Part shown: one piece after another, positions 25,380-33,716 of the stretch
Layout of the letters: the number at the start of each line of letters is the position of its first letter
How positions within the stretch are numbered: position 1 is the first letter of the stretch
NCBI GenBank assembly: GCA_021613535.1
Contig: CP075492.1
Location: 14,384,001-14,448,000, forward strand
Origin: Adineta vaga
Taxonomy: Eukaryota; Animalia; Rotifera
Reading direction: 5' to 3'
Length of the DNA: 64,000 bases
The notes under the pieces: model-generated
The model's input: the letters and a program-made list of their open reading frames with translations, nothing else
Told to the model about the DNA's origin: nothing
Database searches by the model: none
Program-made: the position numbers and the translations under genes

Positions 25380-27047
25380 CTAATCGTGACAACGACAAAC
25401 AATATGACCTGCATCACAACAAGCGCGTGCATCTGTTCCCCCGATACGATAATCGACTTGTGTTCTTGGTGTTGAATATATATCTTTTAATTTCGTTTCC
25501 AAAGCTTCATCGATAGCATCGTATACGGCTGGTGAAACGATAATTGGCGTTGATTCAGCTAAATCGTGACTCAAATCAAAGATTAATGGTGGTTTATGAT
25601 CGATAATTAATCCACGTTGACCACCACAAGCTCCATCAAGAGCCGAATATGTTGTATAATAAGCTTTATATTGATTGAAACGAACAGCTGTAAGAGTACC
25701 ATTTTGATCGGGATGAAATAAATATTCATGGCCTTGATTAGAACCATCGAAGAGTACTGAGCTAAGATCAATTCCATCGAAACTACGATTTGATGGTAAT
25801 GTAAAACCAGTAAGATGAGCAATGGTTGGCAACATATCCAAATGTGATCCAATGGCACTGGAAACAGTACCTGGTTTGATCATACTTGGCCAATGTGCAA
25901 TAAATGGTACTCGATGCCCTGCTTCCCATGTAGTAAATTTTGCTGTACCACCTCCGCCACCTCCAAATGGTAACGATGAAGCTTGCCATATACCACCAAA
26001 TGGTCCTTGATTTCCTGCTAGATCACACTTGGAAGACCATGGTCCATTATCACTAGTAAAGATCAGCAATGTTTGATTTAAGATATTCAACTCTTTTAAT
26101 AGTTGATAGGTTTGATTAATATGATAATCCATTTCACGTAATGTATCACCGTAAATACTCGGTATAGTACTGATATTTTTAAATCGTTGGGAATAATCAT
26201 GTGGAACATGCATATGTGACAAAGGTAGATAAAGAAAGAATGGTTTCTTGACTTTTACACTTTGTTGAATAAATCGTCGATCATTATCAATATATGATTG
26301 TGTTAATGTCGAAAGATTTACCGGTTGTTCAATAATTTCCTTATTACAATCGTCATTCAAACATCGTGGTGTAAGACATTGATACAATGGTATACCGACT
26401 GTTAAATCAGCTTCGATGATCTTCTTTATATCATCAGAATGTTCATGTTTTTGTTCAAAATGAAGTGGTGGATCTCGAGGACATACTTTCACAGGTGGAT
26501 GATTTGCTCCTGGATTATCTGTGCAACCCATATCAATACTATATGGAATACCAATATATTCATCAAATCCCCTATATGACGGATGAAATGGAGGACGATG
26601 TCCAAGATGCCATTTACCATGAATAGCAGTTGTATAACCGACACTTTTCAAATACTCCGATAGAATCGTTTCATTTGTCGGTAATCCTCCGAGGGCAGTT
26701 GGTGCAAAATTTTGCCAAACACCAGTACGTTCTGGTAATCGTCCAGTTAGTAGAGTTGCTCGACTAACACTACAAACAGAAGCTCCACTATGATAATCTG
26801 GAAGACGAATACTTATGGATGCTAAATAATCAAGAAATGGTGTATCGCGTGTATTAGGCCAGTTTGCTCCCATATCACCCCAACTCATATCATCAGCCAT
26901 AATTAGGACAATATTGGGACGTGAACCGATTAAACGTCCCGATAAAGGAACAGTATGAAGAGTAAAACATGGCAATAAATATGTCAGTAACCACAATGAA
27001 GTAAAACATAAAAGTCGTGTTGTAAGAAAAAGAACTATCATTGTCAT
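25380..27047 (-). CDS. Arylsulfatase (ARSG/ARSA-like), secreted, intronless
   Basis: PNIVLIMADDM, CSVSRATLLTGR, GKWHLG, HVPH, SDNGPW, KFTTWEAGHRVP; N-terminal hydrophobic signal. Confidence 0.92.
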   Translation of the reverse strand: MTMIVLFLTTRLLCFTSLWLLTYLLPCFTLHTVPLSGRLIGSRPNIVLIMADDMSWGDMGANWPNTRDTPFLDYLASISIRLPDYHSGASVCSVSRATLLTGRLPERTGVWQNFAPTALGGLPTNETILSEYLKSVGYTTAIHGKWHLGHRPPFHPSYRGFDEYIGIPYSIDMGCTDNPGANHPPVKVCPRDPPLHFEQKHEHSDDIKKIIEADLTVGIPLYQCLTPRCLNDDCNKEIIEQPVNLSTLTQSYIDNDRRFIQQSVKVKKPFFLYLPLSHMHVPHDYSQRFKNISTIPSIYGDTLREMDYHINQTYQLLKELNILNQTLLIFTSDNGPWSSKCDLAGNQGPFGGIWQASSLPFGGGGGGTAKFTTWEAGHRVPFIAHWPSMIKPGTVSSAIGSHLDMLPTIAHLTGFTLPSNRSFDGIDLSSVLFDGSNQGHEYLFHPDQNGTLTAVRFNQYKAYYTTYSALDGACGGQRGLIIDHKPPLIFDLSHDLAESTPIIVSPAVYDAIDEALETKLKDIYSTPRTQVDYRIGGTDARACCDAGHIVCRCHD

Positions 27048-27681: not shown

Positions 27682-30600
27682 ATGCGTGGACGAATTCATC
27701 AGTTATGGGAAAAGTCGAAACTATATTTACGAAATTTAAATTTATTTCCATCAGTTCCACCTTCAAATGATCGACATCAACTTCAAAATCAATTCATTTC
27801 AACACGATTATTTATTCTCTTATTCAGTCTATTATTACTCATCCTTCTCTCTTATACTTCTCTAGTCACTATTCGAAAAACTATCATCGTCAAAACACCA
27901 TCATTCACTGAATATGTACGATTGAATTCTACCTATTCTGAAACATTAACATGTGCATGCACTAAAATCTCGATTGACTACAAAGAGATTGTTCGTATTA
28001 ACTATACGTTACATCAAGTTTGTTCGAGTATTTTCATAACCAACAACTGGATGAATAGTTTCTATCCAAACAAGACGAACGGTTCGAATGATATACCAAT
28101 CTTAGATTTCCGAGTACTAGGTACATACTCATTTCAAGCTTTGAAAAGCTTCTGTGAACTCGCGAATCAAACAATCTCGGACAGTATAGATCAATTTTAT
28201 TTGAATCAGTACGTGAGCGCATTTGTAACAACATACGATCAATTTCAATTACAAGTTCAGCTTCTGGTTATTCAATTTCAATCTTCTATCATTCGCAATT
28301 TCTGGTCCTCATTGTCTATGATTCGGGAAACTACGCAAGGAAATGCTTTGTATTCAATCATTCAAATAGCATATAGATTATATTTAAATGAATATTCTAG
28401 GGGTTTATACATGACTTCGATCAAATACGTAAATTGTAGCTGTTCAGCTTCCAATAAATGTCTGGGAGACTCTAATATATACAGTTATCCAAGGCCTCAA
28501 ACACTGTTCACAGTTCCAAATTTTTATATCGGATGCTATGTGATAGAGGGATTGCTACAATCAACTCTTCAGTGCTTCTATGATCAGAACTGTATCAATA
28601 AACTTCAGTCTTACTTGTCAAACACTTCACCAGTTCCTGTCATAGCTCTTAACTCATCGTTACCAAGTAATTATCATACCAATTCAACAATTAACGAGCT
28701 TCTCAAACAGTTAATGATTGAACAATGGAATATCTTCATCATGTATGAGAATTACTATGGACAATGTAAGCCAGCTGAATGTAGTTATAGTTATAAGACA
28801 CAAAATGGTGCGCTTTATATCATTACAACAATGATTGGATTAGTTGGTGGTTTGGTAACAGCTTTGGAATTTGCTGTACCATGGTTGGTGAATATTATAC
28901 GAAGAAAAAAGAGAGAAAACAGGCCAGTTGAAGGTAAGAAAAAAGAGTAGTTTTAGTATCGATCATTAAAGTGTTTCCAATAATGATGATGTACGAAAAA
29001 ACAAATGAATCGATCTGCCACAAAATAACCTCAGCTTTGTAAATAGGTGGTTGAAATTTTCAGAGTGATGCATTTAAAAATAACTACTATAGTAATGGAT
29101 ATATATTTTACAGCTATACTCTAGAGTCATCAAATTATTTAAATATTTCAATTAGTAACGCTTCTTTATCCTTTGTAGTACTAAGTATTCATCAACGAAT
29201 AACACTGATACTCCAAACATTGAAACATTCCGTACGAAATTTAAATTTATTTCCATCAGTTCCACCTTCAAATGATCGACATCAACTTCAAAATCAATTC
29301 ATTTCAACACGATTATTTATTCTCTTATTCAGTCTATTATTACTCATCCTTCTCTCTTATACTTCTCTAGTCACTATTCAAAAAACTATCATCGTCAAAA
29401 CACCATCATTCACTGAATATGTACGGTTGAATTCTACCTATTCTAAAACATTAACATGTGCATGTACTAAAATCTCGATTGACTACAAAGAAATTGTTCA
29501 TATTAACTATACATTACATCAAGTTTGTTCGAGTGTTTTCATAACTAAAGATTGGATTAATTATATTGATTCTACCAATACAGAAATAAACTTGTATTAC
29601 TTGGATTTTCGTACAACAGCTGCATATATATTTCAAGTCCTAGAAGGTTTCTGTGAACTGCTAAATGAAACAATCTTCGACAGTCTGAATGAATTTTATT
29701 CTAATTCATATGTAAGCGCATCTATAACATCACTTAATGTATTTCCATCTCAAATTAACACATTGATCAGTCAATTTCAATCGGCAATGATTGATAAATT
29801 TTTATTATCGTTTCTCCTTATTCGGCAAACAACTCAAGGCAACACTTTACTGTCTGCATACATGACAAACTATTGGCCTGGCGTACCATGGGGAGCAACA
29901 TATGTCGGTTCGCGTGCCTTGGAATACGGTGAATGCTCTTGTGCTACATCAGCTACATGTGTCGTTCAATCATCGTTCTACAACTTGGCAGACACGTTAC
30001 CGATGTTCTCGTTGCCGGGTATTTATATAGGGTGTTATGTGATTGAAGCATTGCTTCAATCAACGCTTCAGTGCTTCTATGATCAGAACTGTACCGATAC
30101 AATTCAGTCTTATTTATCATTTACTTCACCAGTTCCAGTCATGGCTCTTAATTCATCTTTACCAAGTAATTATCATATCAATTCAACAATTAACGAGCTT
30201 CTCCAGCAGTTAATGATTGAACAATGGAATATCTTCATCATGTATGAGAACTACTATGAACAATGTAAGCCAGCTGAATGTAGTTATAATTATATGACAC
30301 GAAATGATGCGCTCTTTATCATTACAACATTGATCGGATTGGTGGGTGGCTTAGTTAAAGCTTTGCAGTTTGCTGTACCATGGTTGGTGAATATTATACG
30401 AAGAAAAAAGAGAGAAAACAGGCCGGCTGAAGGTAAGAATCCAAAGTATTCCTTGAGTAAATGGATCATTCTCAATTATATTAAATTGGGGATAGTCATG
30501 ATAGGCCCTTTTCCGATATTTAACAATAATTTTTTTATTCTTTTCAGCATTAAGCATTCTTGAACGAATGACACTATTATACCAAACATTGAAACATTCC

Positions 30601-31831
30601 GTACGAAATTTAAATTTATTTCCATCAGTTCCACCTTCAAATGATCGACATCAACTTCAAAATCAATTCATTTCAACACGATTATTTATTCTCTTATTCA
30701 GTCTATTATTACTCATCCTTCTCTCTTATACTTCTCTAGTCACTATTCAAAAAACAATCATCGTCAAAACACCATCATTCACTGAATATGTACGGTTGAA
30801 TTCTACCTATTCTAAAACATTAACATGTGCATGTACTAAAATCTCGATTGACTTACAAAGAGATTGTTCATATTAACTATACATTACATCAAGTTTGTTC
30901 GAGTGTTTTCATAACTAAAGATTGGATTGATTACATGTACAGCGGTAGTGAAGGTGGCTTATGGGCTGATGACTTTCGAATAGAATCTCCAAGTTTATTC
31001 CAGATATTAGGAGGATTCTGTGAATTAGTAAATCAAACATTATCTAGCCAATTTAATGTATTTTATTCAAGTGGATATATGAGTGCATTCGTAACACCAT
31101 ATGATTTATTTGAATCAGAAGCAAAAGCAGTCATTGATCAAGTCAAATCGTTCACAATTAGTAGATGGATGTTGTCGTTGTCTTTAACTCGACAAACTAC
31201 TCAGAGTAATTCTATTCTAGCAGGAATACTTAGTAACTATGATCTACAAGTAGTACCTGTTTCTGATGGTATTACATTTACAGTAACAGTTTACGGTAAC
31301 TGCAGTTGCGATTCTTCACCGCTATGTGCTGACCATTCTTATATTTATGACGAATTCACGCGTGACATATTATTTAAAATACCGGGTTTCTTCTATGGAT
31401 GTTATTTTGTTGAAGCATTGCTTCAATCAACGCTTCAGTGCTTCTATGATCAGAACTGTACCGATACAATTCAGTCTTATTTATCATTTACTTCACCGTT
31501 TCCTGTCATAACTCTTAATTCATCTTTACCAAGCAATTATCACGTCAATTCAACAATTAACGAGCTTCTCCAGCAGTTAATGATTGAACAATGGAATATC
31601 TTCATCATGTATGAGAACTACTATGAACAATGTAAACCTGCTGAGTGTAGTTATAGTTATGAGACACGAAATGATGCGCTCTTTATCATTACAACATTAA
31701 TTGGATTGGTGGGTGGTTTGGTAACAGCCCTGAAGTTAACTGTACCATTCGCAGTCAGATTGATTTCATATTGCATTCATAAATGGAGTATGAGAGTAGT
31801 TCCAGAGATGCTAAATTTACAACAAACATAA
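27682..31831 (+). CDS. Single gene with three concatenated 2-TM / Cys-rich ectodomain modules (~1260 aa); one +1 frameshift
   Basis: Phase-1 introns 28934-29178 and 30433-30547 (GTAAG...AG) join the modules in frame; extra T at 30853/4 relative to modules 1 and 2; each module is TM1 (RLFILLFSLLLLILLSY), ~330-aa ectodomain, TM2 (IITTLIGLVGGLV). Confidence 0.85.
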
Positions 31832-32099: not shown

Positions 32100-33023
32100 T
32101 GTTCGTCGTTGGATGAATTTCATTTCTATTATTTATCCATCTGCGTGGTAATAAATCAGATATAAGACTTTTTAATTCATGAGAAAATCTTTGTGATGCC
32201 ATCTATATATAAATAGAACGATGCGGTAGGAAAAAAAGATAATTATTTTATTTCACCCATAGAACTGATGAATTGTTCGATAGCTGCTCGATCCGCTGAT
32301 TTATTTGTGACATAAATGGTTACAGCAATATGAAAATATGTAACCATCCATGGTGTTTGAGTTAACATGTGGACGACTATTTGAAATAGAAGCATTGCAA
32401 AAATTTGTTGATCACGTTTTCGATTCATGTTCTCCTCTTCATGCCGAACGTTTGAGTCGAAGATTTCGATGAATCAGTATGGCACAAATCATCATAATAG
32501 AAATGGCAAGAATACCTCCGGTTTGCATAGGTAATATCAACCAGATAATAGTATTTATTACAACCACAGGATAAGCAGTTCGAACTGATGTGAAATTTCT
32601 GATCCGATCATTTGCGGAGGTCGACATAAAACGATCGACACATGAAACAGTCAAATACCAACGATAGATCATAGTTACTATCTGTAGTATATAGAAACGA
32701 AATTTGCAGAAGGCAACATTTCTTGTAGTTGGATTCGGATGATTGAGTGAATATAAGAATGGCGCAATAGTGAGAGACAAATAGATTGCCATTAGTACTG
32801 ATGATGAGCTGAAATCTAAATAATAACAAAAATATCCATATGCTAAGCTCAATTCTATATATAAATTTACATATGGAAAACACGATATTGTACGAAATTG
32901 TCGCCGATTCAATACTATGATGTTAAAAAAGCAACCAATTATACCGAAAACCAAATAGGTTGAATAGACATAGCGAATAATATTTTGTTGAATAGCACAG
33001 AATGTGCTACCTAATGATGACAT
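32100..33023 (-). pseudogene. Orphan GPCR pseudogene
   Basis: FGIIGCFFN, FCKFRFY, CVDRF, RDQQIFAML; internal deletion after ILPMQ and frameshifts near 32440 and 32240; end approximate. Confidence 0.7.
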
Positions 33024-33716
33024 TGCAAGTATAGATATGAGGCCAGTTATAATGTATTTCTTCACAAAGATAAGAGATCTGAAATAAATAAAGATAACAT
33101 GCTCGTTAACAACTATAAAAAATAAGTAGGATGATATGATGTCAATTGGTTTGCTATAATTATCGGATTTTTGTTCAACAAAAAATAAAAGGGATAATTG
33201 AATGTAAATATGTATTTAGAGCAGATGAGAATCGATTCAAATTTTGCTTTCTTTTAGATTTTATTTAAGAGCATGACACAAATTGTTTCCTGAACATGAA
33301 CATTAGTTATGTCATGCATATCTCTTATAATTATTTAAACATGAATTCAAGGATACTCATTGGAGTATATGTAGATTGAAGAAGACATCCTCAATGATGA
33401 TGTTCTTCTAACATATAGGTTTTATTAATGATGGATAAGAATAGGAAAATATGAAATTGAAATAAAATCATGCTTTAAAACTCGGAGTTGTACTCAAGAA
33501 AAAGATTGCTAGATCAAAATATAATAATTAAATATATCAGTTTCTAGTAGTTCACATACTATGAATTTAACATTTAATGATCGAACGATGTTAATCTAGT
33601 TACATCTCTAAAACTTATGGTGTAATTAATAGTTAAAAACATGAGAGATATTCTGTATGAAAACGAACATTAAGACAATAAAGTGACGCCCTTTACATAA
33701 TTTACAATAGTTATTA

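Follow-up and report, generated by a model that had tools for sequence, protein, structure and literature searches.

Does a run of three similar membrane-protein modules in the genome of the bdelloid rotifer Adineta vaga represent three neighbouring genes or a single one, and what might its product do? Here, we address this question for a 64,000-nucleotide (nt) stretch of DNA (the window: contig C3:14384001-14448000 of the six-contig, 100.8-Mb assembly; all locus coordinates are window positions), in which the ATG at 27682, found both in the list of open reading frames (ORFs) and by script, starts a gene of three modules, each with two transmembrane (TM) helices. We propose that this is one three-module gene, that the modules pack together within one chain, and that the gene belongs to a probable receptor repertoire. 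We regard this reading as likely as a whole, and its core, the three-module single-chain architecture, as very likely.

The proposal begins with the modules themselves. Each has two hydrophobic segments (at about residues 36-65 and 377-400) and an ectodomain of about 315 amino acids (aa) that carries 12 cysteines and 6-9 N-x-S/T sequons. The second helix, TM2, reads IITT(L/M)IGLVGGL in the window modules and is the best conserved segment of the family (consensus IYIITTLIGLxGGLxTVLK). The window modules also show the other family features, namely the 12 conserved ectodomain cysteines, an H-x-x-C motif, YY..C.P..C and the GLxGGL of TM2, and modules 1 and 2 end in basic RRKKRENR tails. The product is a six-helix membrane glycoprotein, with all three ectodomains lying to one side of the membrane and basic cytosolic linkers leading from each TM2 to the next TM1.

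The layout of the locus is that expected for splicing. Both donors (GT at 28934 and 30433) sit after the first base of a codon, that is in phase 1, the acceptor AGs end at 29178 and 30547, and the frames beyond them run into the TM1 of modules 2 and 3. Module 2 lacks an in-frame ATG upstream of its TM1 and carries ATA where module 3 has ATG (30568). A preliminary description of this DNA had recorded these GTAAG donors, acceptors and in-frame phase-1 joins, the lack of an ATG proper to module 2, and the build of each module as TM1, a cysteine-rich ectodomain with sequons and TM2, joined by basic linkers. All of this stands: the ORF list and script agree on every coordinate, the ORF list and the module alignment agree on the start of module 2, and segments, cysteines and sequons were counted module by module.

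The same layout recurs among the paralogs. Apart from fused open frames, a canonical frame-keeping intron is present in 33 of 34 junctions, always in phase 1, mostly with the donor G/GTAAG (a slash marks the splice site) and spanning 43-1142 nt; recurrence on this scale puts the junction layout far beyond chance. These phase-1 donors and acceptors are kept among paralogs at 40-50% aa identity. The spliced linker, counted from the GG motif of TM2 to the NLF motif of the following module, is 49 aa long at the median, has exactly this length at 15 of 33 junctions and also at the two in the window, and compares with 49, 49, 46 and 55 aa at the four intronless, fused junctions. The window gene thus shares the family trait of three modules, phase 1 at both junctions and a linker of about 49 aa. 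Some copies are a single open frame: the paralog L035 (C2:1012958-1016647) encodes three modules in 1260 aa, and an environmental metagenome contig holds a continuous three-module ORF of 1283 aa. In the fetched arrays modules 1 and 2 end RKKK...xG/GTAAG, and the tail (Y/W)xI(R/H)KW...VVPE..., followed by a stop, is found on last modules only. About half of the second and third modules are without an ATG of their own, and gene models of A. ricciae and Rotaria share the same two phase-1 introns.

One could still read the locus as three separate tandem genes, each encoding a 2-TM subunit that assembles non-covalently. Module 1, read on into intron 1, meets a stop after 5 codons and forms a complete ORF of 422 aa, module 3 has its own ATG, and 33 of 245 public models contain a single module. 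Yet module 2 is without a start, splice sites are conserved between distant paralogs, the spliced linker is as long as in the fused ORFs, single-open-frame paralogs exist, the terminal tail is confined to third modules, and no array exceeds three modules. Junctions, linker length, fused copies, tails and the models from other species together make three genes very unlikely, and we leave that reading a bare outside chance. Sequence comparison instead supports the three modules as exons of one gene, three symmetric phase-1 exons, and the splicing of the modules into one chain, as first described, agrees with family junctions, linkers, fused paralogs and terminal tails alike.

How general is the number three? 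Searched in six frames, the genome yielded 1080 candidates, of which at least 99 are scored modules, for the most part grouped by three, and a degenerate DNA pattern for YY..C.P..C gave 523 genome matches against 24 for a reversed control. In all, the A. vaga genome has about 500 modules. Exactly three modules are present in 19 of the 20 fetched arrays and two in the remaining one; a fourth is found in none, with 1.5-kb flanks included. Contig C1 shows 15 clean triplets in the motif list and never four modules in a row. The 245 public bdelloid proteins compared (Adineta, Rotaria, Didymodactylos) include 110 with three full modules, of median length 1276 aa, and none with four. Three is therefore supported as the fixed module number of the family, so far as these sequences indicate, and the earlier claim of exactly three holds for the arrays and the public proteins. 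In the two-module array, L050, the second module bears the tail of last modules, and the best intron at the junction has phase 0, not phase 1. Separately, a C-terminal extension of about 470 aa with FG-GAP/VCBS matches in Pfam occurs in about 20 of the three-module proteins (among them P0021, P0046, P0047, P0060, P0209, P0234 and P0235), which come from several Adineta species; these may be a genuine subfamily, or else neighbouring gene models may have been fused repeatedly.

The modules of one gene are not equally similar along their length. In a DNA alignment of the window modules the N-terminal flank is nearly identical, the C-terminal flank about 93% identical and the core about 50% identical. 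For synonymous divergence (dS) the core of these modules gives 1.5-2.4 and the flanks 0.06-0.40. We extended the comparison to 21 arrays (20 fetched and the window), taking residues 21-120 and 301-400 as flanks. Between modules of one gene, aa identity is 0.47-0.82 in the flanks and about 0.30 in the most variable stretches of the core (residues 121-140 and 221-280); between modules of different genes the corresponding values are 0.28-0.62 and 0.24-0.31. Within a gene, dS is 0.02-0.4 in the flanks and 0.4-2.4 in the whole core (residues 121-280), whereas between genes it is uniform along the module, which argues for homogenisation of the flanks by intragenic gene conversion, beyond mere constraint. 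Conversion thus keeps the membrane-proximal flanks and TM helices of a gene's modules nearly identical, and the cores escape it and diverge like the cores of different genes. In trees, the modules of one gene group together and form no clades by position; modules 1, 2 and 3 therefore differ by their tails and not by their bodies. Position-specific clades were rejected for whole modules and for cores, the number of label changes being about the same as with shuffled labels.

A. vaga is an animal known for gene conversion, and receptor repertoires maintained by conversion, such as the paired immune receptors, offer a parallel: constant parts are homogenised while others diverge, in large, lineage-specific, tandem families. 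They differ in that conversion in the rotifer family acts between modules within one gene and spares the core, not the tails.

We next consider whether the modules resemble any known protein. At E<=1, Pfam has no family for window modules 1 and 2, and at E<=10 none of the compared channel families is found in four full-length paralogs; matches to TetR-C_39, DUF3278 and Ogr_Delta are short and were dismissed as spurious. A module profile has no match among PDB sequences. For structure, AlphaFold gave the 417 aa of window exon 1 (alignment of 101 other modules) a predicted local distance difference test score (pLDDT) of 94.6 and a predicted template modelling score (pTM) of 0.80. The ectodomain of this model is mixed alpha/beta and includes a long helical hairpin; TM1 and TM2 are both long, and the N terminus forms a short helix. 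Foldseek of this module model against the PDB returned a best E of 2.8, the ectodomain not having been folded and searched alone. Foldseek rows for Nav/Cav channels, with template modelling scores of about 0.05, are meaningless. The ESM Atlas holds rotifer clusters only, apart from ciliate rows scoring 0.77, which we take as a lead only, and we found no description of a three-module rotifer family in the literature. From these searches the family is, as far as sequences go, very large, uncharacterised, known only from bdelloid rotifers and without a detectable known fold. The preliminary description had likewise recognised no characterised family, and none of the searches (Pfam, PDB sequences, folds) reveals a relative outside rotifers.

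For the chain as a whole, the intronless paralog L035 (L035:1628-5227) stands in, the window exons having been searched separately. Its model (1200 aa, alignment of 84 public three-module proteins) has a pLDDT of 87.7, with values below 50 in the two linkers only, and a pTM of 0.79. By rough arithmetic from the definition of pTM, about 0.4 is expected for three rigid modules of undefined mutual orientation; a pTM of 0.79 therefore corresponds to a mean inter-module error near 7 A and points to a fixed arrangement. A complex prediction with three L035 ectodomains scored 0.31 against a mark of 0.34 and is counted neither way.

What, then, could such a chain do? The three modules may pack in a fixed arrangement, so that the chain would act as a hetero-trimer whose 2-TM subunits are covalently joined. 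Its variable cores would form a binding or recognition surface, distal (by connectivity) to the TM-adjoining flanks, and the conserved TM2 (GLxGGL, TT) and basic linkers would pass on a signal or gate a pore. We put the chances that the family is a diversified repertoire of surface receptors, chemosensory or for non-self recognition, at about one in two. The organisation has partial counterparts. SLC25 mitochondrial carriers are likewise single chains, built of three homologous 2-TM repeats in tandem whose six helices have pseudo-threefold symmetry; their repeats differ in being about 100 aa long and without an ectodomain, the rotifer modules have no PF00153 match, and the six-helix bundle is unmatched in the fold search. 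Nav, Cav and TPC channels share the principle of oligomer subunits concatenated in a fixed order within one polypeptide, but have four (or two) 6-TM repeats and form pseudo-tetramers.

Closest in plan are the DEG/ENaC/ASIC, P2X and PAC (TMEM206) channels, whose subunits resemble the module in having both ends in the cytosol and two TM helices with a large glycosylated ectodomain rich in disulfides, and which are trimers, a number matched by the modules of the rotifer chain. Might the chain, then, be a natural covalent pseudo-heterotrimeric ligand-gated ion channel, with three TM2 helices lining the pore? Besides topology and module number, the idea draws on TM2 being the best conserved segment, with its GLxGGL and TT motifs, on the pTM of the chain, and on there being no cytosolic signalling domain. 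Membership of the three channel families, which the preliminary description had suggested checking by fold and profile searches, does not hold up, however. We found neither a PF00858 match nor the palm/thumb/finger ectodomain of DEG/ENaC/ASIC, whose G-x-S selectivity motif is absent from the TM2 consensus; neither a PF00864 match nor the ectodomain fold of P2X; and neither a profile match nor the beta-rich ectodomain of PAC. With no sequence or fold relation to these channels, and with conserved glycine motifs that serve plain helix packing too, we consider a channel doubtful. The same topology is also found in the 2-TM ERGIC/Erv41-46 proteins, so that the product, instead of being a surface receptor, might be an intracellular protein that faces the lumen of the early secretory pathway. 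One paralog, P0151, touches PF07970 in 37 residues at TM2, scoring 23.6 bits, which is exactly the cut-off. No PF07970 match extends across the luminal domain, the window modules have none, no Erv41-like fold was found among 48,161 chains, and housekeeping cargo receptors do not typically come as hundreds of paralogs with hypervariable cores; we accordingly give this reading a small chance.

A further question is whether the window copy is itself intact. Module 3 reads GACTTAC (30850-30856) where, by alignment and script, modules 1 and 2 read GACTAC, and the resulting +1 frameshift at 30853-30854 means that no uninterrupted frame runs through all three modules of this copy; because the extra T shifts the frame of module 3, the ORF list holds a fourth ORF (30827-31831). 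The chain of 1262 aa given in the preliminary description consequently exists only with the extra T dropped, since the spliced frame as assembled stops at TAA 30874-30876, after 944 codons. Beyond the frameshift, 334 codons are open in the +1 frame with every conserved cysteine kept. Two paralogs, L038 and L044, have third modules broken by independent 1-nt deletions at other sites, that of L038 (third module, L038:4289-5487) falling in the codon of an invariant cysteine, and all three frameshifts among the 21 arrays sit in third modules. As the three differ in site and direction, we reject a programmed frameshift in favour of lesions or assembly errors.

For the window copy, the odds between an assembly error and a young lesion truncating the protein at 944 aa are roughly even. 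The presence of the extra T in the assembly, the deletions of L038 and L044 and the internal stops of several family members all fit a young pseudogene or truncated allele, in which the T would be real and translation would end after module 2 and the TM1 of module 3. This is a reading to which we give a little under an even chance, as the downstream codons are fully open with their cysteines intact, the ratio of nonsynonymous to synonymous divergence (dN/dS) between modules 2 and 3 is 0.23-0.40, and the site lies within a stretch of about 330 nt with hardly a difference between the three modules; near-identical stretches of this kind are where short-read polishing performs worst, and the public contigs collapse there. 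The early stop is nonetheless one of several points that weigh against the proposed three-module receptor gene. The broken third modules of L038 and L044 make real decay of the window copy plausible too. Splicing at the window locus is something we infer from comparison only, and L050 (G000:C4:405300-413000) is a two-module variant. The fixed packing of the three modules is weakly supported, by the pTM of the chain model. The dN/dS of the cores (0.24-0.94) is raised but is no proof of positive selection, and no signalling domain, ligand or current is known for the family.

Some further observations concern the locus itself, the features of which are collected in the table. Read contigs from two 2013 runs (their kind is not on record) are contiguous over both introns and leave 30697-30853 uncovered. 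One contig of the X3 run matches exactly the span of intron 2 (30434-30547) and is unlike the sequence beyond on both sides; similar loose contig ends lie at 29041, 29075 and 31023, and these may be library chimeras. The frame of module 2 runs on through intron 2 for 43 codons (30433-30563), up to a TGA (30561-30563) just before the ATG of module 3; were the intron retained, the product would have two modules and a hydrophobic tail. An exact-protein look-up returned no public record for window module 1 or for the sulfatase-like ORF upstream.

Features of the three-module gene and its neighbours (window positions; a slash marks the splice site)
Feature	Position	Strand	Remarks
Exon 1 (module 1)	27682..28933	+	417 codons and 1 base; ATG, cytosolic N-terminal helix, TM1, ectodomain, TM2, basic tail RRKKRENRPVE
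Module 1 TM1	~27787-27876	+	in exon 1
Module 1 variable core	28042..28521	+	module residues ~121-280; from DNA alignment, identity profile and dS
Module 1 TM2	~28810-28890	+	in exon 1
Intron 1	28934..29178	+	245 nt, phase 1; donor G/GTAAGA, acceptor CCTTTGTAG/
Exon 2 (module 2)	29179..30432	+	1254 nt, symmetric 1-1 exon; without own ATG; tail RRKKRENRPAE
Module 2 TM1	~29292-29381	+	in exon 2
Module 2 variable core	~29550-30030	+	matches core of module 1
Module 2 TM2	~30309-30371	+	in exon 2
Intron 2	30433..30547	+	115 nt, phase 1; donor G/GTAAGA, acceptor TTCTTTTCAG/
Exon 3 (module 3)	30548..31831	+	tail of last module only, YCIHKWSMRVVPEMLNLQQT; stop 31829-31831; broken by +1 frameshift
Module 3 TM1	~30661-30750	+	in exon 3
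Frameshift site	30853..30854	+	TT where modules 1 and 2 have a single T; not covered by public contigs
Module 3 variable core	~30920-31400	+	matches core of module 1
Module 3 TM2	~31673-31756	+	in exon 3
Upstream ORF	25380-27047	-	555 aa, directly upstream on the other strand; sulfatase-like motifs (CSVSR, GKWHLG)
Downstream ORF fragment	32439-33065	-	208 aa, hydrophobic; resembles part of a multi-pass (7TM-like) receptor gene

The family, which has about 500 modules in a 100-Mb genome, is among the larger gene families of A. vaga and is without a name, a Pfam entry or a structure. Conversion-kept flanks around free cores in a single gene offer a clean system in which concerted evolution and diversification coexist, and the intronless paralog L035 is a directly expressible construct. 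If the chain is a pseudo-trimer of fixed order, it would be a natural counterpart, on an unrelated fold, of the engineered concatenated trimers of ENaC, ASIC and P2X. At its furthest, and in our estimation improbably, the family may be a bdelloid-specific repertoire in which ligand-gated channels or receptors are natural covalent pseudo-heterotrimers, with an ectodomain of new fold and a fixed order of three different variable cores, conversion keeping pore and scaffold matched. If true, this would be a new way of building combinatorial sensory or non-self receptors.

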